Assembly (NCBI GenBank): GCA_965649765.1
Contig: OZ287752.1
Span: 65,348,001 to 65,412,000, forward strand
Direction of reading: 5' to 3'
Length of the DNA: 64,000 bases
Source: Bispira polyomma
Taxonomy: Eukaryota
A program made the translations under genes and the position numbers. The notes below the pieces were generated by a model. It was not told where the DNA came from, did not search any database, and worked only from the letters and a program-made list of their open reading frames with translations. Position 1 is the first letter of the stretch; each line of letters begins with the position of its first letter. Of the stretch, positions 10,559 through 64,000 are shown in pieces.

Positions 10559-11060
10559 ATGATCCTTCCATTTGCATGTTTTGTGGCCGGTCCAATAGGA
10601 GGCTGCAAAACCACATTTTTGGAAAAATTAACTGGAACTCAAAGATGGAAAGATATAGCAGCCTCCATCAAAGGGTATATAGTGTTAAACACAATAGCAA
10701 TCTCTCTATGTTACAATGAAAATATTCCAACAGGGATTGCCTGAGGTTGAGGAATTACAATCTTGCTTGCAGATTTTAGATGACATGGTGTACTTCTTGA
10801 AAAGTGGAGCCACTAACCTGTTCACTAAAGACAGTCTTCATCGCAATATTTCTGTCATTTCGGTTACTCAACATATTTTCATGAAGGTAAATACCAGAAA
10901 AAAATACACATTATATATAGTTATGTTTAAGAATCCCAGAGATGCCAGTCAGATTTAGCATTTAGCAAGGCAAATGTACCCGAAATATTTAGACTATCTG
11001 GTCCAACTGTATGACAGAGTAATGCAGCTATTTGTTCATTGATCTCAAGCAAGAAAATCC
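10559..11060 (+). pseudogene. Polinton/poxvirus A32-like packaging ATPase relic
   Basis: PFACFVAGPIGGCKTTF (degenerate Walker A), ILDDM (Walker B), LFTKDSLHRNISVISVTQ, YIVMFKNPRDASQI, LARQMYP, LFIDLKQ; frameshifted. Confidence 0.75.
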
Positions 11061-36231: not shown

Positions 36232-39200
36232 TTACCGCGGCCTTATGTAACCTTCGGGCAAGTCCTCATCCTTTAATGTAATCCAGGGTACCCACAGGCC
36301 GCCATGATTAATGGGAAAACCTTTAGGATCCTGGGGCTTGTTGCCGGGGGGCACCGCTGTTTTGCGGTATTCCAGGAGCCGTTCGGTCATTTTTACAACC
36401 ACCTCAGGCATTTTGTCAGCCAGATTGTGATACTCGCACGGGTCGGCTGTTACATTGTACAGACATGGTTTAGCTGAGACATTACAGTTGATGGTGGCAT
36501 CTGGTGGTTTTGGACCACAGTTGACCACATATGGAGTACCTTCTTTGGCTGTTCTGCCAATACTTTGCAGAATATTTTTGAGATCACTCTTAAACATATG
36601 AGTAGGAGCAACTTCTTGATTTATTGAAAAGACTCCACCTTGGCTGTTGAGGCTACCCTTTGCTTCACTGAAAGGCAATGATATAAACTTATTATCACAC
36701 TGGCAGCCGCAGACTTTAATACAAATAGTTAAACCCACATGTTAAAGTTTTTACTCATCCAATAAATCTGTACTGGTACTCAAAGCCAACAATTAACAAA
36801 GTAGTTAATAAATGGATGCAATAAATATATTTGACTTTCAAAAGCACTTATTTCAAAAATCAATGTCAGTATCACATCTTTTACCTAACGGATATTTAAA
36901 TGATATAAATTGTTTAAGCATGTAAAACAAATAATATGATTGACATTCAAAAGCACAAAAATTGTAGAAAATCAAATTTAAAGATCAAAGTATAACAATT
37001 ATTTGGCACTAAATATAAACTTCCTTTTATAGCAGTTTCTGGTGATATCAAAGCATGAGAAAGTGTTTGATGAGGCGAGAACATGATGTTCTAAACCTGG
37101 CTATAGAATGACAACATAGTACAGTATAACCTCTATTTGCTGTACTTGTATTATCTAAATATTTAAGTACATGAACTAACTTTTCCTTTCAATTATCATT
37201 TAACTGTTTTTTTATATTTTCATTATTTTATTCAAAATGTTCTGCAATATACAAATCATAGTTGTTGGGTAATGATGTTAAACTAACAACTGTAAAATAA
37301 TAGTTGTTGAGTGATAATGTTGAACTAAGAACTGTGAAATTAACAGATAAAACATAATTCTAGGTGAAAACTAGTTAGTACATCATCAAATGCTAATAAA
37401 TGATATGGTTACTGTTTCTAACCCTGTGTTAGTGTTCTCCGTCTGATACCACGCCTGCCAGCTGTAAGTGTATCCACGTTTAGCAGAGATCAGCTTCATG
37501 TCCTCTATTCTTAGAGCCCACGATTCCTCACTGTCGTCAATGTTATGTAACATTTCTGTTCTGTACTGCAGTACAGTATGAAAACATACAGAATGGAAAT
37601 GAAAAACATCAGACCATGTCATTGTGGTACTAAATATGATATTCCTCGGCTTCACGTTTTTTTAGAACTAACCCAGACAAACTTTGGCAGCCTCTGGACA
37701 ACCTGGGAGAAAACAATACCCGAGAGCCTATATTTAGAATGTTGGGTCATAAACAGAATACCCACAAATACTTCATTATTAGTATGCTGGGGAAACCATA
37801 TCAGTGAAGGTTAACAACAGGGGTTCAATATACATGTATTTACTAGGGCTGCATCTGTACCGCCGGCATTGTCGGTATCGGACTATTTTATGTGCCGACC
37901 GAGTACAAAAGTCAATGCTGGTATTTCATAACTACAGGCTTTTTACTGTTAACGAACAAGTAACTTTGTGTATTAAATCATAAAAATACTTTTTATGTTA
38001 GAAAATTATTGAAATTTGAGAGTTATTATTACGTTTTAGTTGTTTTTAGGTTATCTTCTATTCTATTAATCTTCTATTACTCAATTATCGATCTCCCATG
38101 GTTTTTAAAAGAATATATGTTATATAGAGTTGAAGTTGGCTGTGATTTTTCTCGCAACTCTCTCTTTCACTATAGAGTGTATAAAATACCTATACTTTAT
38201 CCCCTCATTAAAAATGTAATTACAGTACAGTACAGTAGGAACACAGCACATAAATTATACTAGGTTATAGAAATAATGGTACATTTAATGATTACAGATA
38301 ATAAACAAGTTAAGATAGATTAAACCTAACAAGAACTGTGGATTGTGTGTATTCCATTGAAGGTAATTAGATTAAAACAAATTATATCGCTTTGCTTTTC
38401 AGATAACTTAATCTCTTCGAAATCTTTGCAAACCATTTTTTTTTATTACAATTGTATTTTACAATGAGATGGACAAATATTTTAAGATGAATAAGGAGCA
38501 ACCCTTTATAGCTCAGAGAAATCTGTTTTCAAACAAATTACACCTTGAATTTAACCTATCTTCCAGAAAATTCATTGTGTACAGCATTTTTAGTACTTAG
38601 TATCTTCTGTTTATTTCACTTTGTAAATACCTACACCAGTTGGCTTTGCTTCACTAAGGGTTGACCACTGGTCTATTCCGTCAATAATCTTAGGCAGTGA
38701 ATGCATGTCGTACCCAGCAACACTGAGTAGTGTAGGTAGCCAGTCAATTACCTGTAAACATATTAAAACACATAATACAGTAGAACCCCAGTTATCTGAA
38801 CATCTCTGGGGACACAAGTTTGGTTTGGACAAGCGGGAAGTTCAGATACATGAGAGAGCAACATAGTGGTATGGGAAAAGCTGAAAAACATTTATAATTA
38901 TACCATGAGTTTGACTGCAAAACATTTCTTCTGCCCAATTTAAAAATGTTATGTTATATTTTTATAAAAAAATAACTTATCATCTGTCTTACATATTTTA
39001 TTATTCTGATGTTTATATTCAAGACTGAAAATGTTGGTACTGTATTGTGAAAAATTTTATTTCTAATTGAATACAGTAGAACGTTTAACATTTAATGCAT
39101 ACTAGGTCATGAAGACACACACAGAAGCTGTATTGATTTTTAGCTAATCTGCTCCATTTAGTGTTGATGATACAGTATATCAGCATTTGACTGTGAAGCC

Positions 39201-41596
39201 ACCTGGTGTTGTCCCTTTTTATTTGATTAGTGGTACACACAGGCCCTGCCTTGATGGTTTGCAATAAGCTTTTATAACACAAATAAATGCTGTACAATAA
39301 AAGAAATAATAAACCTTCAAACAAGAAGAGGTGTTCGTTGTTTCTAGTGCTTTGTGTTATGTAGTTTAACCTATTGTCAGAATATTTCGGTTTATATTTT
39401 AAAAATTGGGGGAAATCATATCGGATTAGAGTTTTGGACGAACCAAAGTAAAAAATCAGGGTTATATAATACATGTGTAAAAACCAACCACCACAACATT
39501 ACAGAGCTTCAGTAACACTAGTAAGTCCTTGCAGACATCCAGGTTCAAATTAGTCCAAATTACTTTAGCATGGATTACGGCTGTTATTGGTAATCCGTGG
39601 CTGTTGCATCCTTGGTTCCTCCTGCTACGTGTGACCTGGGGTGGGTTTCACCAAACCTCTTTAAGATAAATGTCTCCATAAATTTACGTTTTTCTTTGAT
39701 TTCCCCCTTCCTTTGGTAATGTGCCTTTCACCAACCCTCCTTAAATTCAAGGAGACTTTAATAATTAGAGCTCCTTCCTTTAATCATAAGGAAACCTCTT
39801 TGCTTTAAAAGGGGAGTTTTACAACACATCCTTGAATTAAAGGAGCTCTAAAATTGAAGTTTTCTTCCTTAAATCTTAAGGAAACTTATAAGTTACCTTA
39901 GTTTCCTCTTTTAAATAAGTTGTCAAATATTTTTTCAATCTATGCATATATTTTATGCTGTTTTTGCCTGTTTATTATTTGTAAGTGTTATAAAAAACAT
40001 GTAAGAAAGAAATAGTTGCTGACGTTATTTTAAGAAAGGAGCAAACTAAGGAGGTTTGGTAAAACTGGTCCCTGAACTGAAAGAACCTAAAGTTGTGCAT
40101 GCTAATGTTTTTATTAAGTGCCATACCTGGATCATTATATGTGACGTGAACCCAGAATTTTGCAGCAAGGGACTCCATATGAAGCCATCACCATGGACAC
40201 CACCTTCCCACAGCCCGGCCTTGGTACCTCTGAAGAAAGAGTATGTGAAAACATATATATATATATATATATATAATTGAAGCATTTACAGAGTACCAAA
40301 TTGATGAGAACATCATCCAAGGCGCTGATATCGAAAAAGGGAAAGTCCAGGGTCAAGTAAAATGTTGTTACAAACAAGAGGAGAATGGCCTGGCAGCCAT
40401 ATCATGTTAATGCCACTACAAAGCAAAATTCAAAGTAAAATCTGAAACATATGTATAAACAACCGAATCGCCTTAAAACATGTTTTGATAATTTATTTTT
40501 CACATAAGTTTTATTTAAAACCTGATAAAAACAATTTTTTATATATTTTGGTAGTTCACAAAAGTTGGTTTGTTTACCTACAAAATTATCGGGTTTATTG
40601 ACAGCTCTAGAAACGACCAAACCATAATTTTTTTTCCAATTTTAATATTTTTATTTTTAGCTGTTATAGCTTGCAAAACGTCCGAAATTAGTATAGTCCG
40701 AAGATAGTGAACCACTAGTTACTATCCCTATAAACAATAGAAAGTACTGGTCATCAGTACAGAAGCCACTATAGCACCCCAAACAAATCTATCACTTAAA
40801 TTAATTCCTTGCTAATCAAAGCCCATGTTTAATCTAATTACAGGTGTTTTTTTTACTAAACTGTCGCTGTTCTATGCACAAACACTTTACAAATCACAAA
40901 AGGTATACACAGATTAATTAATTTAATCACACTTACTTGAATCCTTTAATAATCTAAATCACAAAAGGTAAATAAAATAGCACTCAGCTAAAATGGCGTA
41001 TAAGTTTTAAGCTTATAAATATAATACACATATATAAATAGTCAGAGAATAAATTTATTTGTTTCCAGGGGATATATTATTTTGCAAGGGGATACAAAAA
41101 TTTGGCAAGCCCCCTTGCCATATTTTGCTTCCCCACACACTTTTTTTTATGCGTTACACTGGTACACTTAGTTCAATTATAATTGTTACCAAACAAGAAA
41201 AATATATTTCCTACCATCAAAAACCATCCATTTTTTACCCCATATGGTTTATTCCTATTGTGACACATATAGCTTCTGTAATTTTTATCCTTTAAAATAT
41301 TCCAGTTAACCTGTATGCAATATATTGGGTTCACCATATATATTTTTTGTCAGCTTGATACAGTAAGGAATCTAAAATTTGCTCCTGTATCTAAAATTCG
41401 CCACCCCTAATAATTAAGCCAAATAAATAAAATCTGGCCAAAAATAACTGATAAGGAAGGCAAATTATTCATAAAAATATTAATTTAAGCAAACATTTAC
41501 CACAATTCTACCCAAAACACAACATTTTCTAGGTTGCAAATTTCAGATGGTGGCAAATTTTATATCCCTTACAGCCACAACCATCCATCAACTAAA

Positions 41597-41666
<70 letters not shown>

Positions 41667-44600
41667 TCCCAAACCTAATGTTTGTCATGTATATTATATA
41701 TTCCTTTTGAAACCATTTGAAATGGAACCTTCAATCAAATCTGAAGATCCCAATATATAAAACTTAAATAACTTGTACTATACTGCATATAATCACACCA
41801 AATTAATTTTGGACCAACTAAAGACCAAACAGTGTATATATACCAAATTTAAGAGCACAACTCTTTACAGATTCAGAGATTACCCTGTTGACACGTTGTA
41901 ACCATGCATAACCAAGGTTCTTCAACTATTTCCTTTCTCCAGGAAAGCATGATTATGCCAATAAGCATTGGCATAATCATGCAAAAAGCATCCACTAGGG
42001 AAGGGTGACTAAAGAGGGGGTAGGCCAGTATGAAAAGGTAGGTTTTAAGATGGCTTCTTTAACCCAGTGATTTTATCCTATGATCTGAAAGTCTGTAGGA
42101 GTAGTATGTGGAAGTCTTAAACAGTAAATAACTGAAGTGTACGGCATCTAAACTTTGCTGTACCCCCTAAACTTCTCCCCCTTGTTGTTTGAAACTTATT
42201 CCTGGAATCTGTAAAGGAAACCAAAACTGAAGTACTATAATCCACCAGCCTACGGAAAGTAGAGTTGTACTAAGTTGTAGCGTCAAATAATTTCACATAA
42301 TTTACCCCCATTAGTACATTAAAATTAAATCTTTCACTCGAACTTGTAACTTTTAAATTTAAAAGTGAAAGTGAGTTTGTTATGGTATATAATATAAAAC
42401 AAGAGAAAACATTAGCTTTAGTTAAAGCATTCACAGTAGAACTTCTATTGTCTAAATATTTGATTTGATGAACTAAATTTTACTTTAGCAACATTGTAAT
42501 TTTCTTACGTTCTGCAAAAAAATAATTCTTCTTTTTTTTTTATTATTCTATAATCGAAACAGATTACCTGGATCAATCTCCCCTAGTGTTCCGATAATAG
42601 ATTATACTGTATAAGTTCTGCATAAATTAAACCTTTATTTTTACATTAGACACATTCACTATTATACAATCTGTTGGTCTGAAGACTATGAGCTATAAAG
42701 TTGTGAGGGACTCCATATGAAGCCATCACCATGGACACCACCTTCCCACAGCCCGGCCTTGGTACCTCTGAAGAAAGAGTATGTGAAAACATATATATAT
42801 ATAATTGAAGCATTTACAGAGCACCAAATTGATGAGAACATCATCCAAGGCGCTGATATCGATAAAGGGAAAGTCCAGGGTCAAGTAAAATGTTGTTACA
42901 AACAAGAGGAGAATGGCCTGGCGGCCATATCATGTTAATGCCACTACAAAGCAAAATTCAAAGTAAAATCTGAAACATATGTATAAACAACCGAATCGCC
43001 TTAAAACATGTCTTGATAATTTATTTTTCACATAAGTTTGCTTTAAAACCTGATAAAAACAATTTTTTATATATTTTGGTAGCTCACAAAAGTTGGTTTG
43101 TTTACCTACAAAATTATCGGGTTTATTGACAGCTCTAGAAACGACCAAACCATAATTTTTTTAAAGTTACAAAAGAATATTGTATAGTAAGCAAACTTAA
43201 TGCAGGAGTTTACAATGTTTTGAGATGTATGACAACTGTGAGATTAGCCTATCAATATTTTAGGCTGCATATAAAGCCATTCTTACCTGAGTGGCTCATT
43301 ACTTGCATAATTCATGTCAAACCCATTAGGAGGCCCTCCATTATCAGTGGAAAAGACAATGACAGAATTCTCTAACATGCCTTTGTTGTGTAAGGCTTTG
43401 GTGATGTTGCCTACTGCACTGTCCAGGCAAGATACCATAGCTAGAATGGATAGTATAGGAATATTGTATAGTAAGCAAACTTAATGCAGGAGTTTACAAT
43501 GTTTTGAGATGTATGACAACTGTCCAGACTCCAGACAAGATACAATGGTTACAAATATTAACTGGTAATCTTAAACTAAATGAATGATACAAACTCTATT
43601 ATCCAAACTTCTCTAATTTCTAAAATATTTGTTCTTCAGGAAAGTTTTTTCTTGTTTATATTTTCACAATTCATGCTTCTATAGTTTCAAAAAAATATAT
43701 TACACTTCCATACATTTAAATCTCTATCAGAGATTACCTATTTTCATAACCAATCTCTTTTAACAGGAGGAGTTGGGAAGTGCCAAAAATTGGCCAGAAT
43801 TTTAACACAGTCAAACTCAGATCAACTTTGATGGATGCTTGTTGGGTTTAGTATTTGCACGAATAAGCATTCTGATAAACAATTTGGGTGGTGGATACAA
43901 AAGTTTTGACAAAAAGAAAACATTTCAAAACCAATGCTAATCACAAACTAAACTGAATTAAGGAGGGTTTAATTTTATAATATTAGAACTAATTTTGATC
44001 CATACCTGCAAACATCCTTCTCTTTTTATTCTGTATGTATGAGAATTTCTCATAGTATTCATAAGGAGCCTCCAGGGGTTGCCAGGAATTCGAGCTGTGA
44101 ACAGCTTGGAATGGTAGATACAGGAACAGAGGCTGTTCAAAATACAGCCAAAACCACTATTATCCGAACTCTGAATATCTCTGCTATCTGATAATTTCAA
44201 CCATATAAATTCATTTTCACTATACCAAATCAATGTTACCCAATTGTTTCATACTGATGCCCCTTGTACTTTTATTAACCAAATATAAAAACACACAGAC
44301 AAAAACTAAAACTAGAAAATAGTTTTGATAACAAAATCGAAGCGTCCCTATAGTTAAATTAATAATGAAATTGTTTAGTGTACAAGGTTTGACATTGTTT
44401 AAAAGCTGACATATAAGCAGAATCAGCACTTTTGGTAAAATATAACCTCGAAATCGCTCTATCTAGCACCATTTCCGAGATAACAGACGTTTTCTAAAAA
44501 GAAGCAGAAATTTAAGATGGTTGCCCAAATCAAAAATTACTTCAAAAGTTTACATATAAGGAAAATCAGCCCTGGGGGTAGAAAATGAGCTTGAAATCGC

Positions 44601-47241
44601 TCTATCTAGCACCGTTTCTGAGATAAAGGACATTTCCGAAAAAGACGCAGAAATTCAAGATGGCCGCCAAAATTGAACATTTTTATAAAAGTATAAATAT
44701 AAGCAAAAACAACCCTAAGGGTCAAAAATGAGCTCGAAAACGCTCTATCTAGCGCCATTTTCGAGATAACAGATATTTTCGAAAAATATGCAGAAATTCA
44801 AGGTGGCCACAAAAATTGCGATTTTTTGAAGTTTACACAAAAGAAGAAATCAGCTCAGTGAGTTGAAAATGAGCTTGAAATTGAAATTGCTCTATCTAGC
44901 ACCATTTCCGAGATTAAGGACATTTTCGAAAAAGACGCAGAAATTCAAGATGGCCGCAAAAATCGAACATTTTTTTAAAGTTTACAGATAAGCGCAATCA
45001 ACCCTGTGGATTGAAAATGAGCTCGAAATCGCTCTATCTAGCACCGTTTCCGAGATAACGGACATTTTCGAAAAAGTCCCAGAAATTCAAGATGGCCACC
45101 AAAATCGAACATTTTTTCAAAAGTTTACATATAAGCAAAATCAACCTTATGGGTTGAAAATGAGCTCGAAATCGCTCTATCTAGCCCCGTTTCCGAGATA
45201 ACAGACATTTTCGAAAAAGTTGCAGAAATTCAAGATAGCCGCCAAAATTGAAATTTTTTTTGAAAGTTTACATATAAGCAAAATCAACCCTGTGGGTTGA
45301 AAATGAGCTCGAAATCGCTCTATCTAGCACCGTTTTCGAGATAATGGACCTTTAAAAAAAAACCTTAATTCTTAAAATTTTTTGGATGGGGTAAAAAATA
45401 AATAAAAATTCAGGCTATTCTTTAAAAGTTACGCACTGCATGTACTGGTCTAAAATTAAAAACAAAAAAAATCCTCACACGCTCAAAAAAGCACCCATCA
45501 ACACATTTTTTTCCCCATTTTGTATGATTGATAGACCCTGTCAATCAGTCAATTATCACCAGATTGATCTAAAAATATACGGACATCTATGTTTTGGTAT
45601 TTGCAATGTGCATGCTAAATTTCATTGAACTATGACAAGTACTTCAAAAGAAAAGTTGATAAAAGTGCAAGACAGAGCAAAATAGAGCAAAATACTCATT
45701 TGAAGTACTCAGTACTCATTGAGTACTGGACTTAGAACTGTGAGATTTTTACATCATACATAAAATCAAAAAGTAGATGAATAACTTATACCAAGAAAAA
45801 GCCAAAATCCCAATAGTTTCCGAGATAGCAAAAAAGTACCGATTTTCGCATTTCAATAACAAGAGGAGAATGGCCTGGCGGCCATATCATGATAATGCCA
45901 CTACAAAGCAAGCTACGGATGAGTCCGAAAATAGCGAACCAGAAACTAGTTAACAGTTTGAAATGGATTTCGAGAGCCATCTACTGTGGGTACCTGGTAA
46001 GTTAAACCAAAGGGAAAAATTCAAATCTGAGACATTTGTGTATAAACAACCGAATCACATAAAAAAGGTTTTGATAATTTTTTTTTTTGATAATTTATTT
46101 TTTACACAAGAGAATGACCAGTTTGCTATGTGCAAGTGTGAGGCTCAATTTCTGGGCTGCAAAACTGCGACTAAATAGAAAGATGATTTTCTGATATAGG
46201 TGTTGTTACACGAAACAAATATTTTAAGTGAATTATTCTTATAGATCAAACCATTTGGTCACAGGTCCAGTAAACCACCGCTGATACTATATCATACTTT
46301 ATGAATAAACCTCCAACAACCTACCACATTAGAAAAGACATAATTAATAGCTATTAAAAAATAATAACAAAAATGTTGAATATAAAACCTCCAAAATGTT
46401 TTATTTTACAATTTTATGTACAAAGTATTGTATAGCTGTTCTATATTATTTTCACACACAAACAGAACAAAAGTTGTCTTCCATGTACGTAGTATGTATA
46501 AAGTTTCATTAGAAATCCCCCCCCCCCCCGCCTCTCAAAGTTTTCTGGCTTTTGTACAAGTCCCCCACCCCCGTCCAAGTTTTCTGGCTTTTGTACTGGT
46601 ACAGATTGCCCTTTCCATTTCCTTTCCAAGGTTCTTCCGTGGAGAGTTGTATTACTGTATACTGCTTGTAAAAATAGGATTCATGCCATTGTTGCATCAT
46701 TTTTAAAGTCATATTTTTGTAGGGTGAGTAAAGGTTTGTATTGATGTTTTAAAGTGTAAAAAAATAAAAGTATAGTGATTTAAGGTAAATAGACAATTTA
46801 GTTTAAGTTCAGTTTAATAGATATTTATGTTGTGTTCAAATTAATGAAAAGAACCAACAAAGAAAAAAATAAACCAACTATGACCTGGACACACATTGTG
46901 ACCATCTGTGTATGTATATGAGAAGGGAGGTGTTTGTCTTTGCCTTACTTTTACAGCAGTACACTGATTGTCAAAATTATGTTTTGTTATAAGTGCTTCA
47001 ATTTTTAATGCCAGTTTTTATAGTAAAGGTAGAAGTAAATATTTGTGTTGTTGTTTTAAATGTACACTAATAAAATGATTGCTTTAAGCTCAAAGCATTT
47101 TTAATATATAAATATATATATGATTAGATTGTATGAAATTCATAAAAAATTATCAAAACAGTAAAAAAAATTAAAGCAATTATAATCAAGCCAAATATTG
47201 TGACCAGCAGTATATGTAGAACTGACAAGTGTAAACCCCAG

Positions 47242-47307
<66 letters not shown>

Positions 47308-50300
47308 TTTGATCTCTAGGCTGTGATGTTATTCACTTGTTTTACCAAACATTGTATACAGACACAGACACACACATACATAGAATACAATGCCAGTCAT
47401 GGTGTTTAGTGTGGTAGAGGACCCTTCAATCAAATCTGATAATCTCAATATATAAAACTTGATTAACTTCTACTATACTGCATATAATCACGCCAAATTA
47501 ATTTTGGACCAACTAGAGACCAAAAAGTGTACATATACCAAAACTCCCTACAGATTCAGAGATTACCCTATTGACAGGACGTAACCATGTGTAACCAAGG
47601 GTCTTCCATTGTACACTTTTCTATCTCCAGGAAAACATGATTATGCCAATAAGCATTGGCATAATCATGCAAAAATCAATCGGTTGGCAATCGGTCAATT
47701 ATCATCTGATTAATCTCATCAGCGTCTCCCATCCTGAAAATTGCCTTACCAAGGTACATACCAAATTTCATTGAGCTATGATGAATACTTTCCCAGAAAA
47801 CCTAGTCACAAGCACTTTTACACCCCCAGGGTCACTTGACATATAAGTAAGCCAAAGTTCAAAGCCAAGAATATGAAAAAAATTTCCCACTCCTGTGTAA
47901 GAGAACTGCCAAAAATAATTTTGATGCAGATAATATTGAAGGAGATATTCAAGGAAGACCATGCGGCGGCGGCACAGGTGGCGGCGGCGAGGAAACCAGG
48001 GGTGAAACTAAATAAGCGCCCTTTTCAAGGGACGCTTAATAAGTATCAGACCTTTCCAATTTAGAAGAAGAGCTTAATGCCGACTGCTAATATCAACTAA
48101 AAGCGTACTCAGTATAGGATGTGGCTCTGCGAAGTTGTTACAGAGAAATAAGAAAATGAAACAAAAATGACGGTATCTTATCAATATACCGTTCTATGCA
48201 GATCTGCTTCAAAATGTAGTCGATTCTTCCTTGGCCTAGTAGTTTTGTGTAATTCTCTTGACAAAAACTAACCAACCAAAAGACGCAGGCAAAGATATAT
48301 AACCTCCTCAGTAGAGGGTAAATTTGATAATTCTAAAAATGCACCCGACTGACTGTAATTTTACCTCAGACGTATTGTGTTCTGTGATGACCTTCTCTGC
48401 TTCATTGGTGAACAGCTCTGTGGAATACTTCCCATAATCCGTCTTCACCACTTCATTATTCCGATGAAAGTCCAAACCCCAAGTTTCTTTCTTTGAAGAT
48501 AAAAACACAGAATTCAATTTATCTAACGAAAAAAAGACAACTGCTTATTGAAACCTATTACCTGATGGTATTTTACTATTTTTATACTCAACAATGTATA
48601 CTATATAAAAATAATACAAATCTCTTTTTATTTCTGTATAATTTACAATATTTTACTCATAATAAAAAACATATTTATTTATAAACTTTATAAATATTTT
48701 TTTTATCACAACAGGTAAACAGGTTTTAATTAGAGTCAAATATATTATATAAAATAAATATAAAACAATTCACAATATTTTACTTATACTAAACATATTT
48801 ATTTATAAAGTTTAGTTTACTTTACAAAGATTGTTTTTATCACAACAGTCAAACAGGTTTTAATTCACAAGTCAAATACTTAAATATGTAAATATACATT
48901 ATTTTAAAATTAGGTGCCAGTATCCAAATAAGAAAGCAACTTACTACACATGCAGACAGAGTTTATCATAAAAACTGTGAAACCGCCAAAAGTCGACGAG
49001 GTAAATATCTTGTATTATCGCTCACTTAAGCCGATGACTTAATAAAATATTACCCTACAAACATTCGTCTTCAAAGACAAAGTTCACAGGTCTGGCATCT
49101 CATTGAATGCATTATTTTATTTAATAGTAGAATCTTTTGTATTTTGACAATTTCATTGTAGTTTTGATTAATTAATGGCATAGGTGTAGTATAAAGCCAT
49201 TTCATTGGCTGAGAAGATGGAGTTGAAGAAATTAAAAGGAATTGAAGCAACTTTGTGTATATTTGAGGTAATATTTGACTTAATTTTTATCATTTTATTT
49301 TTAATCCAGGAAATTCTTCAATTATTACTACTTCCATATTCATCATACATAAAATATTGTTTAAAACTGATGTTTGTTTTGTAATACTGTCTTAAATAGG
49401 TGCATTAACAATATTATTGATTTCTAACATCTGGGCCTATATATATATACAGATACTTGCTAGTTAATTTACGGAGTACTGCTCTGATGAATCGATTGTT
49501 TTTTCTTTTCCATAGTCCTCGGCCCACAAAATGCTTATATTTGGAATTTCAATTTAAAACTTGCCAGGGAAGTTAGTAAAAATAATGTCCTAAGAAGCAA
49601 AATCATATACAGTAGCATTATGAGAGGAGCAGAAGCGAAGCTTCTCAGGTAATAAAAACAACAACAAACACATTTGACATTATTGTATTATCCGTTTATA
49701 TCAGCACATTAAACGCTCAGGCTTCCAGGGTTTCCCCTTTAGCTTAACTGTTAGTGTACTGGATTATTAATCTAAAGATTAATGACAACCTAGAATCAAA
49801 TCTCATTTAGTAGTAAGCCTCTTTGTAAGTTTACAGCGGAGTCAAGTTATTTCTGTAGTTTACATTATAAAACATGTCTCAAAGAGTGTATTAGGAACAT
49901 CCCTATACAGAGCACCAAATCATAATAATTGGGATCTAACGAACATCAATAATATTAATACACAAGTGTGTTTAAGGGCTTGTGGGAGTTTTAGGCGACT
50001 ATTTTCATATTCATGGAAACCTTGAAATCTAGAATTAATTAATGCTATTTACTCAACTTATACTACATATTTACAAATATTTGCATTTTTGTTATTGAAA
50101 ATCACAATTGTCGACTTCTACTACTGTCACACATCACAACAATGTCAAAAATGTGGTAAAACACATCAGTATAATATGAATTTTCATGATGTCACTCAAA
50201 ATGTTAGACTAAATACAGAAAGAATCAGGTCATACTTTTATTTTGTAATGTTAGTATTGGAATATCTCATTCCAAACCATTTTTCTCCAATCATTGGCAA

Positions 50301-53300
50301 ATTTCCCAAGTATATCCACAGTGTGACAAGAGATATTTCTTAAATACATATTAGCCAAGAACAGATCACAAAAGGCAAAGTACAGATGAGAATGTTTGAT
50401 CACATAAAAGAATAGTTATTTCAGGTAATCAGTTTAAAGAAGTAATTACACAATCACTGATGCCCATAAAAAAAAATAAAATACTACTTATTTGAGTGAA
50501 CTCTAAATTTATGGTGTACATTTGATCTTTTCCAAATTTAATCTGTCACAATATTGTCGTAAACTGAAATCTAGCAACCATTTTCACAAAATAACACAAA
50601 GCTTTTATAGTTATTGTAGTAATATTTTGAAAGAACACCTGTCTGTGTGCCCTAATGTAAAACAGAAAAGTGGTGTATACTTTAGAAGAGGCCTATATAC
50701 AAAATTCAGTTCTAGCCTTTTCAACAGAAAAGTTGATCCCAGAAACAAAATCTGGCTAGAGTTTGTTTTTTTAACTTGGTGATAAGGGGTCCAAAGAATG
50801 TAATTCGTCCAAGAACATTCCTTGCTAAATTAGCATTCCAGAACATGGGAGCCATGAAACAACCTGGCCAAAGATGAACGATAAATGCTCTAGCCATAGA
50901 AAATCTTGCTCATAAGATTAGTGAAGCCAAAGAATCAAACCCAGATTGTGATCAGACACGATTACTGCTCTAGTCAAAGACTGAAATACACACTGTGGTG
51001 GCTTCATATGAGTGATCCCAATAATCTTCCATACCCTGGTAGTAACCATAGTGACTATGGAATCCCCTGTATGTAGGTGTGTACTCATTGGCAAACATTC
51101 CCAGGTGCCACTTGAAACATAGAAAAATATACACACAAAAGAGATTTACACAACAGATAATAATTTTGAAATTTGTCTGAATAAATTGTTGTGTTTAAAT
51201 GGATCAATCTAATGTTCGCGATCCTTGAGAAGTAGTTTGACAACAAGCCCAATCTTAAATCTGATAAAAAAATTCATGCTTAGTTCTCATCAGGAAAAGA
51301 AAGAAGCAAACATAACAATGCAAAATGTATACATGATACAAGCAGTATTTAGGACCTTTAGGCACCTATAGTTAACTACTACACGGGCGGTCACAATAGT
51401 GGTCGGGTCACAATATTGGTCGATGCACATTTCAATGTGTAAAACGTAGATTCCTAAAAAATAAATTATAGTATTCTGTACTTTAATTCATAGACCTAAA
51501 GTAGCTTTCAATATATATTTCCGTCTGTAAATTTGTTAAAAATGCAACAGACGACATTATGACCCGGCCAACATTGCAACCACCCGTGTACTGTAATCAG
51601 CAACAAGGTACGTGTATAAACAATGTTATGAAATGGTTATATGATACTGAAAAGGTCATAGTTATAGAGTTAAAGAAAATCAGTCACAGCAACAGAAATT
51701 GGATGTGATGAGCCCAAGAAATTGTTTGTCCATTTTGCCAATGCCTTGTTTTGCTATGTAAAAAAGATTGACTAAATGTTCCACCCTCCACCCAACATGT
51801 CAAACGTCTGTTATCCAACGTTAAATGCTTAGATAATCAAAAATTCATAATACAGAAGTTTAAAATTAGACATCGTTTGACAAAATGAGCAAATAACATT
51901 TTGTAAGAAGTGGGACTCGCAAACTTCACCATTTGTATAAAAAAAACACCTTAATTTTGGATAAGAGCGGTGGCACGTGAAAAGGTTAGACTAAACAGAG
52001 TAATAACAAAATATAAACTGCCAACTGAAAAAAAGCAAATTAGGACTACTACTCTACAAGAACTTAGTTAAAAAAATTTCAAACTAGACATTTAGTGTTG
52101 GTGCATAGTAAACCTCAAATCCATACTCAACTCAAGATAGACAGTCTCTAAGTATAAAATCTGTTTCACTGCTTGCATTTAAAACCCATACTTGAATTGA
52201 GTGTTCAAAGTCCTATTAAGATGGCTGGTCAGAAGTGGAGTTTATTTACGTTATGAAAGAGTTTCATAGAGTCAGTATATATATGCATGCTGAGTATGTG
52301 TGTAAGCTTGAGATTATTTTCAGCAATAATGGGCGCAGACGCCATATTCTTCAAAATTGTCAAGCTCAATTCAGACACAAGCTCAAACATCCGTCCCCAA
52401 TACTTCTGGCTAGTCAGAAATTGGGATAAAAAATCTAAATAATTAAAATCAGCAGTAGGAGCTCTTCCAAAAACAATTGGCCGGAATCATAGGTTATTTC
52501 CAGATAGAGTTACTTACATAATAGAAGGGACAGAAAATAGAATAATAATTAAAGCATTTATAGAGCCCCTAATTGATGAAAAAAACATCCTCTAAGGCGC
52601 TAGAAAAGCTGTTTTTGTGTAAAACAATAGGAAAATATGAATTTGGGAGAGCGGAAGTGTGTTCTTAAATTCAAATATCAGGAAAGTTTGGTTAATCAAA
52701 GGGGCTACCATACAAGGAATATTACTTTATTTGAATACCAGTTGTTCTTTTGGTTTTTCTTGAGCATATTGGGCTCAGGAGCCGTATTCTCCAAACATCT
52801 CGTGCTTAACACAAGCTTGAATCAAAGGTACATATATATCTGGCTAGAGTCAACATAGATAAAATCTGACTATGTATTTGACTTAAGTGTTGAAGGCTCT
52901 ATTAAAATGAATGGTTACAAGTAGAGGTTATTTTCATGTAAACTAATAACAGTTAATCTTTAGTTGAGTTGAGTCCGAGTTGAGCTACTTTGCAGAATAT
53001 GGGCCCAGATATCTAAAATATAGAAAATGGTAAGTATGGCTTCTAGCATAGGTTAGTGGTCATACTGTGTTTCCTTCTTGGCAGGTGTGATCCCAGTAAT
53101 CTTCCTTCCCCGTAAAGTATCCATAGTGGGAATGAAATCCACGCTTGGTTGGTGTGTACTCCTCTGCAAAGAATCCTAGATGCCACTGTGTATATAGAAA
53201 GCTTAATAAAGTAAACTCTGTACAATAACTGGAACATTCAGTATCCATGGATAATATGAATGTTACAATGGATAATAGACAATATTAATAATTTAAGTTT

Positions 53301-56300: not shown

Positions 56301-59300
56301 TATGAAAATGTGTGAAAATTCATACGTCTGTATATATATATGCAGACTGCTTTTAAATTAATTATGATTATTAATTGACAAACCTTGTCAAGCAAAGCTA
56401 GGTGATTAAAATTAAACAAAAAATTACAGACAACAATATTTATCATGTACAGTAGACTCTGTATAACTAGAACGTCCATTATCCACAGGATTTGGTTCTA
56501 GTTATAGCTAACTTCTAACTATACCTATGAAAATACAGCATTTCCTGGTGTTGAAACCTCAAAACCAGTTCCAGTTATACCTAAATTTGACTTGAAATGG
56601 TTCTATCTATACAGAGTCTACTTTATAACAAAATTGACTTTAAACTTAAGTACAATGTCAAAATTTGATACTGTTTGCAGCTTTATTATTTTCAAATAAG
56701 GTTGCTTTAAACGAGAGGCCATATTTAAATAATTAATGTGAACTTTCAATCAAATAATGCGAACACTTTATGGTATACTGTTTATTTTATTTTGTAGATA
56801 ATAATTTCATTCAATTTAAACACATCTTGAAACTTAGTATTTTTTAAGATAATATACGTCACATGGTTGACCATACATTAATAAAAGGTTAAATTTTCAG
56901 TGAACTTCATTTGCACTGCAACAATTCAAACTATCGAATTTCTGACATTTTTACCTCTACCAAGAGGGTTATGTTTTGCCTGTGTGCAACTGTGCATTGG
57001 TTAGTTTATCACTAAGACTATTCACAGCGATTGAATTCTTCCAGGCAAGTGGACTAAATTGGAAGAAATGGAAGAAACTGAAAGTGCTGAGGAATATTAC
57101 CATGAAAAATCAGTTAATTTGAGGAAATATGAAGAAAAACATTCTTTAGGTAACTAACATGTATAGTGATGGATAAATGTACACAAAAACAACTGATCTG
57201 CTGATTTAAATGATATTTTTGGCACTCAAGGGCATTGTCGGAAGTGTGCTCTCTGAGTGCATTTTTAGTTGTTTATGGTATAGCATAAGGAGAACCCTAC
57301 CTTTCCTACTATATGTGACTTGTATCCAAGTTTATTGAGGTATTGAGGTAAGACAGTTTCATTGAGTGGCAATCCATATTTTGCCGAACCAACAATCACA
57401 CCAGATTGAAGCCCTGGACATTTAAAATAAATAGCAATGGTTAAGTATTCACATTAATGTTGATGTTGGTTTCTGATTATTGCTATCAGCAGAAACAAAA
57501 GAGTAGCCCAGGGGGCCACTTTGGCAGATACTGCAGGGGATTGTTTGATAGATGTTTGTATTAGATGAAAGTGTTGCTTGATAAAAATGTGAGGTATGGT
57601 GATTTTGTAGGGGTAGGTTGTAGTTATTATGTTTGTTATTGTTTGTCGTCAAAATCGTAAAATTTGTGAAAAGTTGTCATAGATCCTAAACAAGTTACCT
57701 GTGGGCCAAAAATGAGGTCGAAATGGCTCCATCTCGCACTGTTTACGAGATAGCGGACGTTTCCGGAAAAGACTCAGAAATTCAAGATGATTGTAAAATT
57801 TGTAAAAAGTTGTCATTGACACTGAATAAGAAAATCTGTGGGCCAAAAATTAGGTTGAAATCGCTCTATCTCACACCATTTACAAGATAGCTGACATTTC
57901 TGGAAAAGAGGCACAAATTCAATATGGCCACCAAAATTGTAAAATTTGTGGAAAGTTGTCATAGCCCATAAACAGGATACCGTGTGGGCCAAAAATGAGG
58001 TCGAAATCGCTTCACCTCGCACTGTTTACGAGATGGCGGACATTTCCGGAAAAGACGGGGCAATTCAAGATGGTTGCCAAAATTGTAAAATTTGTAAAAA
58101 GTTGTCATTGACACTGAATAAGTAAACCTGTGGGCTGAAAATGAGGTCAAGATCGCCCTATCTCACACCATTTACGAGATAGCCAACATTTTTGGAAAAG
58201 AGGCACAAATTCAATATGGCCACCAAAATTGTAAAATTTGTGGAAAGTTGTCATAGCCCATAAACAAGATACCGTGTGGGCCAAAAATGAGGTCGAAATC
58301 GCTTCACCTCGCACTGTTTATGAGATGGCGGACATTTCCGGAAAAGATGAGACAATTCAAGATGGCCACCAAAATCGTAAAAAACTTGTCATAAACACTG
58401 AACAAGATACCTTGTGGGTCAAACATGAGGTCCAACTCGCTCTATCTTGCACTGTTTATGAGATAGCGTTACAGGCAGATTGTGTAACTTGTGCAACTTT
58501 CCAATTCCCCCCTCCACCCTCTATAGCACAAGTATCAACACACATGCAGCTTACGTACAAACCAAAGACAAGTGGGATGAAGAGGTAGCTGGAGAGGAGG
58601 ATTCACATAAGTGCCAAATAAGTTAAGAAATTTTAAGTCCATGATCACAAATTTCGAAACACCAGCAACTGCACACTAAATAAAGTAACCCTACCAAGTT
58701 TCAGGCTGAAAATCACTTTTATTCTTGAAAACTTTGCTGTCCTCAATGGTTGCTAGGCAATACAGCCTCCAGATATCTATCATATGATTGTAAAACAGCA
58801 TAGCAAAAGTGACGCGTCTGTCGTAGAAAAAACACGAACTATGACAACAGAATGCCTAAGAAAAAATAAAATTAGCTATCATTGAAAACATTTTAAAAGT
58901 GGAGACATTAACAAACTGCAATCTGGAAGTCTTAAAGTTTCATGCTGAAATTTGAATTATGCAGTACCTGAAAAGAAGAAAATAAAGAAGTCAATGAAAT
59001 CAGTTTATAAGTTTTATCGCAAAGTTTCCAACTAATCATCCGCTAATCTGATAACAAACTTAATGTAATACACTAATATTAATCACCAAATTTTAGCCTT
59101 AATAATTCAAATAAAAATATCACCAGTTGTCTTGTGTATCACATCAATTGATCAATTGAAGAAAATGCTTATATTAATAATTCTACTATTTATCCTTAAA
59201 GCAAACTTCTGGACCCACCATATTCTCCAAAGACACTGAAGCTTAAACTTGTGCCTACTTCCTCAAGTGCTATGTGGAAGTTCTTTGATAGATGAACTTC

Positions 59301-59904
59301 AATAACTTGTACAGTAGAACCTTTATCATCTATCATTACTTCTATTATCCGAATATTCAATTCTATGAAATCATTTTCACTATACCAAATTTAAGTTTTC
59401 CTATTATTTTATAAGAAAATGCCTCTTGTAATTCATGAACCTTCTACTACCCAAACAAAATCTTGCTCTCCCAGCATGGTTGGATAATACAGGTTCTACT
59501 GTACTTCTTTTCAGCACTAAAGTCAAGTATAAAGTCAGATTTTACTAAACTTTTCTTTCCCCAGAGAAATGGTGATCTAACAGTTTAGCTTAATCTTGAT
59601 TTGAGATTGATGTTTTTGAGAATACAGCCACCAACATCTTGAGTCCTGATTGCATTGCATTAGTCAGAATATTGCTTCTGAACAAAAAGGCACTTAAATT
59701 TCCTGTTACAAAGATGCAATTATTTTAGCCCCTTGAAATGAGAGTCAGCAATAAATAAGATTATACTGCATCACTTGTCTCTGCCTCTTACCTTGCCAAT
59801 GATATGCGACTTATATCCCAATTTGTTCAGATATTGTGGCATGACTGTTTCATTCAGTGGTAGACCATATGGTTCTGACCCCAAGATAACACTATGCTGC
59901 AAAC
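36232..59904 (-). CDS. ARSB: Arylsulfatase B/I/J-like gene, 3' part; exons 59904-59792, 53185-53066 or 51110-50994, 48490-48365, 44132-44006, 43440-43287, 40229-40127, 38751-38635, 37565-37423, 36667-36232; N-terminal exons (CxPxR) lie beyond the window
   Basis: GT-AG exons with matching phases give GLQHSVI...GYKSHIIGK|WHLG...RGFHSHYGY...|...KYSTELFT...|[12 protein letters not shown]...|[12 protein letters not shown]...FSTDNGG...PLR|[13 protein letters not shown]...|VIDWLPTLL...DGIDQW...|RTEMLHNID...|...[16 protein letters not shown]...WVPW. The active-site K, H, H, DN and K residues are retained. Confidence 0.93.
39638..40072. mobile_element. MITE, PIF/Harbinger-like TIRs
   Basis: ggggtgggtttcaccaaacctc ... 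gaggtttggtaaaactggtccc imperfect TIRs. Confidence 0.65.
40373..41987. mobile_element. Helentron/HINE-type non-autonomous element, family 2 (contains (AT)n at ~41598-41664)
   Basis: One end is aacaagaggagaatggcctggc..catgttaatgcca; the other is the perfect 16-bp hairpin gcatgattatgccaat-aagc-attggcataatcatgc (41947-41982). The same ends recur elsewhere in the window. Confidence 0.6.
42706..43162. repeat. Recent ~460-bp duplicate of 40168-40635, including a 3'-truncated copy of the arylsulfatase RGTK exon
   Basis: Near-identical sequence (differs in (AT)n length and a few substitutions). It keeps the acceptor but lacks the last ~40 nt and the donor of the exon. Confidence 0.95.
44440..45350. 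repeat. Satellite, ~143-bp unit, ~6.5 copies
   Basis: gaaatcgctctatctagcacc...gagataa...gaaattcaagatggcc recurs at ~44451, 44595, 44739, 44885, 45026, 45170 and 45312. Confidence 0.95.
45858..47675. mobile_element. Helentron/HINE-type family-2 copy nested in the family-1 element (contains (CA)n at ~47243-47305)
   Basis: aacaagaggagaatggcctggcggccatatcatg at 45858 and the same catgattatgccaat hairpin at 47636-47669. Confidence 0.55.
50994..51110 (-). CDS. Arylsulfatase alternative exon A ([39 protein letters not shown])
   Basis: 117 nt, phase 0/0, ttcaag acceptor, gtgtgt donor, no stops. Confidence 0.85.
51382..51588. mobile_element. MITE with TA target duplication
   Basis: ta-cacgggcggtcacaat ... 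attgcaaccacccgtg-ta imperfect TIRs. Confidence 0.6.
52778..53006. mobile_element. MITE, PIF/Harbinger-like TIRs
   Basis: ggagccgtattctccaaa ... tttgcagaatatgggccc. Confidence 0.5.
53066..53185 (-). CDS. Arylsulfatase alternative exon B ([40 protein letters not shown])
   Basis: 120 nt, phase 0/0, acacag acceptor, gtatga donor, no stops. Confidence 0.88.
55838..56044. mobile_element. Tc1/mariner-type MITE (CAGTAGAAC TIR, TA TSD)
   Basis: ta-cagtagaacacttattatccaaac ... gtttggataatagaggttctactg-ta. Confidence 0.8.
57650..58470. repeat. Satellite related to the 44.4-45.3 kb array; ~146-bp monomers alternating A/B
   Basis: (g)ttgtcat at ~57673, 57809, 57955, 58101, 58247 and 58385; shares gaaatcgct...gagat...aattcaagatgg with the other array. 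Confidence 0.9.
59312..59501. mobile_element. Tc1/mariner-type MITE, same family as 55838-56044
   Basis: ta-cagtagaacc ... ggttctactg-ta with shared internal aaatgcctct...atgaacc...cccaaacaaaatcttgct. Confidence 0.8.
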
Positions 59905-63039: not shown

Positions 63040-64000
63040 AACTAGACCTAGCGCATCGGAGAACCGGTGCATATTTGTATCCACCAAAAAGACAAAGCAC
63101 CGGCGGTAGCAAGCACTCTAGCTAGCACCCAAGCTAGAAGCCTATGATTTCCTATAAGGCATTTTTGCTTAGGCTTTATGCTAAATAATAATTCTGTGAT
63201 AGGCACTTTTAAGTTTGGTGTACCCGTATGACCTTGCACAAGGGATCCAAGGTTAAATATGACCAAAAGATTAGCAGCCCATGATTTCCTGTAGGTTGGT
63301 TTGACATTCCCAATCTCTAGGACCAATAATAAGCGAGTTATAAGCACTTTTAAATTTGGCTACCCTTATTTGACCTTCAAGGAGGGGCCCAGGGTCAAAC
63401 CTGACCACATCAGAAGACTCCAAGCCCATGATTTCCTATAGGTTGGTTTTACATCCCAAAACTGTAGAACCAATAATAAGTGAGTTATAAGCACTTTTAA
63501 GTTTGGCTACCCTAATCTGATCTTGATGGAGGGGCCCAAGGTCAAATCTGACCACATCAGAAGATTTTCAGCCCATGATTACCTATAAGTTGGTTTCACA
63601 TTGCAAACCTGTAGGACCAATAATAAGCGAGCTATAAGCACTTTAAGTTTGGCTATCCTCGTTTGACCTTGAAGGAGGGGCCCAAGGTCAAACCTGACCA
63701 CGTCAGAAGATTCTCAGCCCACAATTTCCTATAGGTTGGCTTGACATGCCAAACCTCTAGGACCAATAATAAGGGAGATATAAGCACTTTTGAAGTTCGC
63801 TATATGGGGTACTTTGGCACTCCGTGGATGACCTTGAATGAAGAGCTTCAGGGTCATATGTCTGCATGCTTGTAGAAGACATATATATCTATTACACATA
63901 TCACCTATGAATAGATTCAACCTTCTAGTTACGAGAACCAGCCAGTAAAAAAAGGTAGATAATTTTCAAAGAAATGCCCATGGCAGCCATCTTGTTTTTC
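63040..64000. repeat. HINE-like element end (aactag + hairpin) followed by a ~147-bp satellite, ~4.5 copies
   Basis: gcc(c/t)a(t/c)(g/a)att(t/a)cct recurs at ~63140, 63276, 63424, 63571 and 63717; hairpin gcatcgg-agaa-ccggtgc at ~63053-63070. Confidence 0.8.

Follow-up and report, generated by a model that had tools for sequence, protein, structure and literature searches.

The analysed stretch of DNA (hereafter the window; 64,000 nt, G000:C5:65348001-65412000) comes from the AT-rich, 1.04-Gb genome of the animal Bispira polyomma. By placing full-length homologs onto the window, we mapped a sulfatase gene on its minus strand, the first two exons of which are located just beyond the window end. 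The exons and related features are listed below in the order of transcription.

L002 about 2135-2043, outside the window: exon 1, signal peptide and 'ADDL', with a hydrophobic N-terminus
L002 617-456, just outside the window: exon 2, C-T-P-T-R, with a Pfam PF00884 match over the cut-off; donor at window-equivalent position 64456
59792..59904, minus strand: exon X1, 113 nt, AG at 59906-59905 and GT at 59791-59790, tblastn match to ARSB-like proteins
57301..57413, minus strand: exon X2, 113 nt, AG/GT flanks, paralog of X1
53066..53185, minus strand: exon Y1, 120 nt, phase 0/0, AG/GT flanks
50994..51110, minus strand: exon Y2, 117 nt, phase 0/0, AG/GT flanks
48365..48490, minus strand: constitutive exon E5, single copy
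44001..44138 (approximate ends), minus strand: exon E6, 'AVH' with the His242 equivalent
43286..43442, minus strand: exon E7, 'DNGG' metal ligands
42706..42767 (approximate), minus strand: Z1, truncated recent copy of the Z2 acceptor region (repeat families D6 and D13)
40127..40229, minus strand: exon Z2, 103 nt, 'TKAGLWEGG' with the Lys318 equivalent
38650..38757 (approximate ends), minus strand: exon E9
37440..37562 (approximate ends), minus strand: exon E10
36274..36621 (approximate start), minus strand: last coding exon

The gene was complete, from the signal peptide, 'ADDL' and C-T-P-T-R through the GK exon junction and onwards, with every catalytic residue present. The active site of ARSB consists of Asp53/54, Cys91, Arg95, Lys145, His147, His242, Asp300 and Lys318 (PMC6282714, PMC5159873), and the exon translations of this gene matched the full list; the catalytic residues outside the X and Y pairs were all encoded by single-copy exons. 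The predicted product is a formylglycine-type (type I) sulfatase of the ARSB/ARSI/ARSJ group, secreted or lysosomal. The closest known enzymes are human ARSB (PDB 1FSU) and the paralogous ARSI and ARSJ; the identity to named homologs was only about 50-60%. In searches made one exon at a time, the nearest named homologs were those of the siboglinid annelid Ridgeia piscesae, with about 55-61% identity over the exons, followed by those of other annelids and of molluscs.

A preliminary description of the window had pointed out two intact paralogous exons in this gene, both in phase 0/0 and separated by 1.95 kb. Open frames and AG/GT flanks were observed for both of them, Y1 (120 nt) and Y2 (117 nt), and the intron between them measured 1,955 nt. 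Of the first 33 codons of the two exons, 16 were identical, 11 differed synonymously and six non-synonymously, which agrees with the 27 of 33 identical leading residues reported before and includes the synonymous codon pairs that had been named. The upstream donor at 59792, at the end of an exon closing with ..IGK, and the downstream acceptor at 48490 were likewise located as described. The catalytic Lys and His had been assigned to the GK|WHLG junction; indeed, the X exons end with ..GK, the Y exons start with WHLG, and the alignment to 1FSU places them at that point. Y1 opens with the Trp-His of the K-W-H active-site motif and is of the 'F/TGK' type. Y2 is of the 'M/YQGM' type, which is also the type found in the tandem paralogous genes, whose exons are 82-94% identical to it. 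Both exons matched human ARSB chain residues 105-138 (E about 1e-7), a segment that starts at Trp146/His147. DNA contigs from Logan tiled both Y exons in two samples with zero differences, and an assembly artefact was rejected for the pair, since the contigs of both samples agree with the assembly. A third Y-like piece at 46691-46536 was considered and dismissed as noise.

The neighbours of the Y pair had been taken to be single-copy, which proved wrong on the upstream side. The upstream exon X1 has an intact paralog, X2, of the same length (113 nt), with AG and GT at its borders and 82% protein identity to X1. Both exons enter in phase 1 and have the catalytic Lys as their last codon; X1 is of the 'LQHS' type and X2 of the 'LQSG' type. 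The exon order in the gene is thus X1 X2 Y1 Y2, that is, two adjacent duplicated pairs. This order excludes the duplication of a two-exon block, as well as interleaved copies of the gene. Separate or interleaved gene copies were also rejected because exon 2 and the exons from E5 onward are single-copy, and because the paralogs are separate compact genes. As the second pair lies directly upstream of the first, four isoforms are possible, and the list of splice junctions in the preliminary description was incomplete.

We consider it probable that one X and one Y exon are spliced into each mRNA, giving up to four variants of the enzyme. Two consecutive coding exons were each duplicated in tandem to yield X1 X2 Y1 Y2, and each mRNA would then receive a single member of each pair, the pattern known from mutually exclusive splicing after tandem exon duplication. 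The resulting enzymes, up to four in number, would differ only in roughly 78 residues around Lys145 and His147 (human ARSB numbering). Because the X exons are 113 nt each, an mRNA with both or with none of them is shifted out of frame and soon runs into a stop. When X2 was read after X1, a stop was reached at codon 6; when X was skipped, Y2 stopped at codon 8, and Y1 remained open through the exon but was out of frame. It follows from these consequences for the frame that productive mRNAs must hold exactly one X, and mRNAs with both or neither X would be expected to be removed by nonsense-mediated decay.

To evaluate the conservation of the four exons, we compared them with those of a related species, represented by contigs of an ENA assembly (loci L001 and L008-L010). 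X2, Y1 and Y2 are kept there in the same order and with intact splice signals, and the protein identity between orthologs was 95% for X2, 85% for Y1 and 92% for Y2. The Y1 ortholog is located at L008 11911-12030, with AG and GT intact. In the related species, the introns are 4-6 times longer than in the window and could not be aligned; at distances of more than about 20 nt from the splice sites, their identity to those of the window was at the random level, which indicates that unselected sequence is saturated between the two species. Against this background, the proportions of non-synonymous (pN) and synonymous (pS) differences were 0.093 and 0.73 between Y1 and its ortholog (pN/pS about 0.13, uncorrected), 0.031 and 0.33 for Y2, and 0.053 and 0.47 for X2. 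The low pN of Y1 relative to its pS, together with the unalignable introns, indicates that Y1 is a selected coding exon rather than a relic, in line with the purifying selection that had been postulated for the Y pair. Between X1 and X2 themselves, pN was 0.138 and pS was 0.85. The distances of X1 and X2 to the paralog exons at non-synonymous sites were 0.132 and 0.139, respectively, with synonymous sites saturated. Judged by these comparisons, all four exons are very likely translated. As a separate observation, Y1 showed about twice the synonymous difference (0.73) that was measured for Y2, X2 and E5 in the comparison of these two species.

A search of the 6 kb upstream of X2 in the related species yielded no X1 ortholog; the sole called open reading frame upstream of X2 was part of a repeat found in 67 blocks. 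When exon 2 was used as the query, the related-species contig carrying X2 was not among the matches, and a word search with the open frame of Y1 did not find close ortholog fragments. A third species (L015) contained a compact gene whose exon 2 is 91% identical to that of the window gene. In this gene, three intact 113-nt X exons and one decayed X exon are followed by an A-type and a B-type Y exon (120 nt each), E5 and E6; the order of the Y exons is the same as in the window, and the intron between them is 204 nt long. The conservation across species that had been suggested as a check was observed for the Y pair: two further species retain Y1 and Y2 intact and in unchanged order. L015 and bivalve isoforms also contain an X exon of the HS type. 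The decayed exon of L015, located at 10814-10906, is of the X type, contains an in-frame TAA and does not have the ..GK|GT end, which suggests that exon copies in these clusters are born and lost.

Exon trees grouped Y1 with its ortholog (support 97/89) and X2 with its ortholog (97/94), and placed the heterodont F-type Y exon with the M-type exons rather than with Y1. Being based on 37-40 residues, these trees leave common descent and repeated duplication across phyla undecided. Five paralogous genes were identified in the same genome, each with one X and one Y exon, and all of their Y exons are of the Y2 type. At least three of them are located in tandem directly upstream of the window gene (G000:C5:65.42-65.47 Mb, L002-L005), and two are dispersed, at C5:54.00 Mb (L007) and C8:63.72 Mb (L006). 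Except for the single X and single Y, their exon plan is the same as that of the window gene. The paralog Y exons differ from Y2 by a dS of 0.5-0.8, whereas the dS between Y1 and Y2 is above 2. The paralog Y exons are thus closer to Y2 than Y1 is, which implies either that the A-type exon was lost in the paralogs or that gene conversion occurred.

We found that RefSeq isoforms of invertebrate ARSB/I/J-like genes, which are computed models, swap exactly the homologs of X, of Y or of both, with the protein length remaining constant, in animals ranging from mussels and clams to a priapulid, horseshoe crabs, a crab and echinoderms. The X exon is swapped in five Mytilus species ('LQHS..' versus 'LQSG..'), in Ruditapes, in the horseshoe crabs Tachypleus and Limulus, and in Diadema; the Y exon is swapped in Mya, Dreissena and Priapulus; and both are swapped in Mercenaria, the crab Portunus and Antedon. 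One Mercenaria gene has models for all four X/Y combinations, each 579 aa in length, and in Mercenaria the F-type Y exon is located ahead of the M-type, the same as in the window. The 'LQHS' and 'LQ[SRQ]G' starts of the two X types are common to the window gene, L015, Mytilus and venerid clams. The sets from Mercenaria mercenaria (XP_053408549-52), Mytilus edulis (XP_071156339/42) and Dreissena polymorpha (XP_052277106-08) show the same arrangement of equal-length isoforms with the X and/or Y exon replaced; they differ from the present case in coming from other species and, for several of them, probably from other paralogs. Logan transcript clusters from oyster and other homologs contained a single exon type only. 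Some models depart from the swap. Both Y exons are included in frame (+39 aa) in Mercenaria (618 versus 579 aa) and Dreissena (636 versus 597 aa), and another Mercenaria gene has one model without the Y exon.

Serial segments were also noticed in individual protein models: P0243 and P0284 of Mactra antiquata carry two X-type segments, and P0345 and P0342 of Mercenaria carry both Y exons. They are probably artefacts of the predictors at clusters of alternative exons.

The choice between Y1 and Y2 must be explained differently from that between the X exons. In agreement with the preliminary description, it lies beyond control by frame or by steric spacing: the Y exons, of 120 and 117 nt, keep the frame, the introns between them are 1,955 nt in the window and 204 nt in L015, and the donors (GTATGA and GTGTGT) are of the ordinary U2 type. 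A U12-based or steric mechanism was thus ruled out for the Y pair by the donor sequences and the intron lengths. One candidate explanation is competing long-range RNA pairing between docking and selector elements, as in Dscam1 or 14-3-3 zeta, which is attractive for exactly the reason that neither frame nor intron length (1,955 nt, and 204 nt in L015) accounts for the choice. We consider it unlikely. The RNA-structure switch that had been predicted found no counterpart in the form of a conserved intronic element or an outstanding inverted repeat. The inverted-repeat scan gave only AT-rich or transposon-like pairs, the intron flanks were no more alike than random sequence once about 20 nt away from the splice sites, and none of the intronic words shared by the two species rose above chance (best E 0.08). 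The inverted-repeat scan and the intron comparison, a weak test with two comparable species, detected no docking or selector elements, and the clam models with double inclusion suggest that there is no strict lock. The Y exon is probably chosen by competition between splice sites together with trans-acting regulators, a mode of choice that could be leaky. The clam and zebra-mussel models with both Y exons and the Mercenaria model that skips the exon likewise indicate that the Y choice may be leaky and not strictly exclusive.

The same both-Y models of Mercenaria and Dreissena, together with the fact that both exons are in phase 0/0 and have lengths divisible by three, which preserves the frame, could also be read to mean that Y1 and Y2 are normally included together and that the enzyme carries a 40-residue tandem repeat, in frame, behind the catalytic His. 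This appears very improbable, since single-exon isoforms of each type exist in the same species, the repeated segment would begin at the active-site W-H in the conserved sulfatase core, and the repeat was the sole form in 0 of about 270 retrieved homolog proteins. Another reading is that Y1 and X1 are unused relics of an old duplication and that only Y2 and X2 are spliced. It would fit with the presence of the Y2 type in all tandem paralogs, with the faster evolution of Y1 than of Y2 and with the X1 ortholog that was not found in the related species, and relics do occur, as shown by the decayed X of L015 and the decayed Z in the window. Yet the frame, AG and GT of Y1 have survived in the two species compared, despite saturation of their introns, at an uncorrected pN/pS of about 0.13, the non-synonymous distance of X1 to the paralog exons is no greater than that of X2 (0.132 versus 0.139), and an A-type Y exon is also the first of the pair in L015; we regard this reading as quite improbable. 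Mutually exclusive use of the X and Y exons is thus the most likely arrangement in Bispira polyomma, as we infer from conservation, selection, reading frame and the isoforms of homologs.

Mutually exclusive exons that arose by tandem duplication are a well-known kind of alternative exon. Those of Dscam1, of myosin heavy chain and of ion channels are likewise adjacent paralogous exons that match in length and phase, have their own splice sites and encode the same structural segment, and the exons described here show the same organization, with lengths of 113/113 nt for X and 120/117 nt for Y and with AG and GT on all four. The X pair shares the usual frame-based safeguard of the classical clusters. 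The Y pair is unlike them in having no frame safeguard, short intron or U12-type donor, and docking or selector elements were not detected. From these features of the sequence, we conclude that the locus contains a real and conserved exon system of the mutually exclusive type at the predicted catalytic centre of a sulfatase. In the literature searched, we found no mention of alternative exons at the active site of ARSB-family genes, and full-text searches for duplicated or mutually exclusive exons in sulfatases retrieved no paper on the subject. The X/Y swap in the ARSB family is present in public annotation, yet apparently undescribed in papers.

If the isoforms differ in substrate, several sulfatases would be produced from one gene by exchanging a segment that holds two catalytic residues, and nature would have provided, in one compact locus, an experiment on what determines specificity in the S1 sulfatase fold. 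The finding is also relevant to the processing of diverse sulfated polysaccharides by marine invertebrates; several ARSB genes are expressed in the scallop digestive gland (PMC5159873). A broader and more speculative proposal, which we put forward as a possibility with considerable doubt, is that the X/Y clusters are an ancient, bilaterian-wide feature of the ARSB family, shared by annelid-like animals, molluscs, priapulids, arthropods and echinoderms. Splicing would then diversify specificity where vertebrates use the separate genes ARSB, ARSI and ARSJ, and each of the four isoforms would act on sulfated glycans of its own. The recurrence of the swap in RefSeq models of many phyla, together with the fact that no paper on it was found, opens the way to a cheap comparative study. 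Caution is needed in annotation, as predictors fuse or drop these exons, as in the two-X models of Mactra and the 618-aa models of Mercenaria.

Other parts of the gene also contained duplicated sequence. The region 42706-43090 is a 98-100% copy of 40168-40562, at a spacing of 2528-2538 nt (2.53 kb). The duplicated piece extends from the end of the intron across the acceptor into Z2, of which it contains the first ~63 nt, and the upstream copy, Z1, runs into a TAG; Z1 reads as a young pseudo-exon, which could serve as a decoy acceptor or a poison exon, or be silent. E7 is flanked by perfect 65-nt direct repeats (43175-43239 and 43459-43523, spacing 284 nt), a pattern that resembles the margin of a nascent tandem duplication of this exon. 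Satellite-like arrays with a unit of 143-147 nt were observed in three introns (44392-45409, 57669-58468 and 63264-63850), and the same family occurs in introns of the related species (L001 4912-6346 and 19257-20623) at about 76-84% identity. In another species (ENA ERZ25069853; L012 6070-7357), the intron downstream of the genuine C-x-P-x-R exon contained about 14 tandem copies of the 3' half of that exon, 93-109 nt in length and about 95% alike; every copy has AG ahead of it and GTAAGT behind it.
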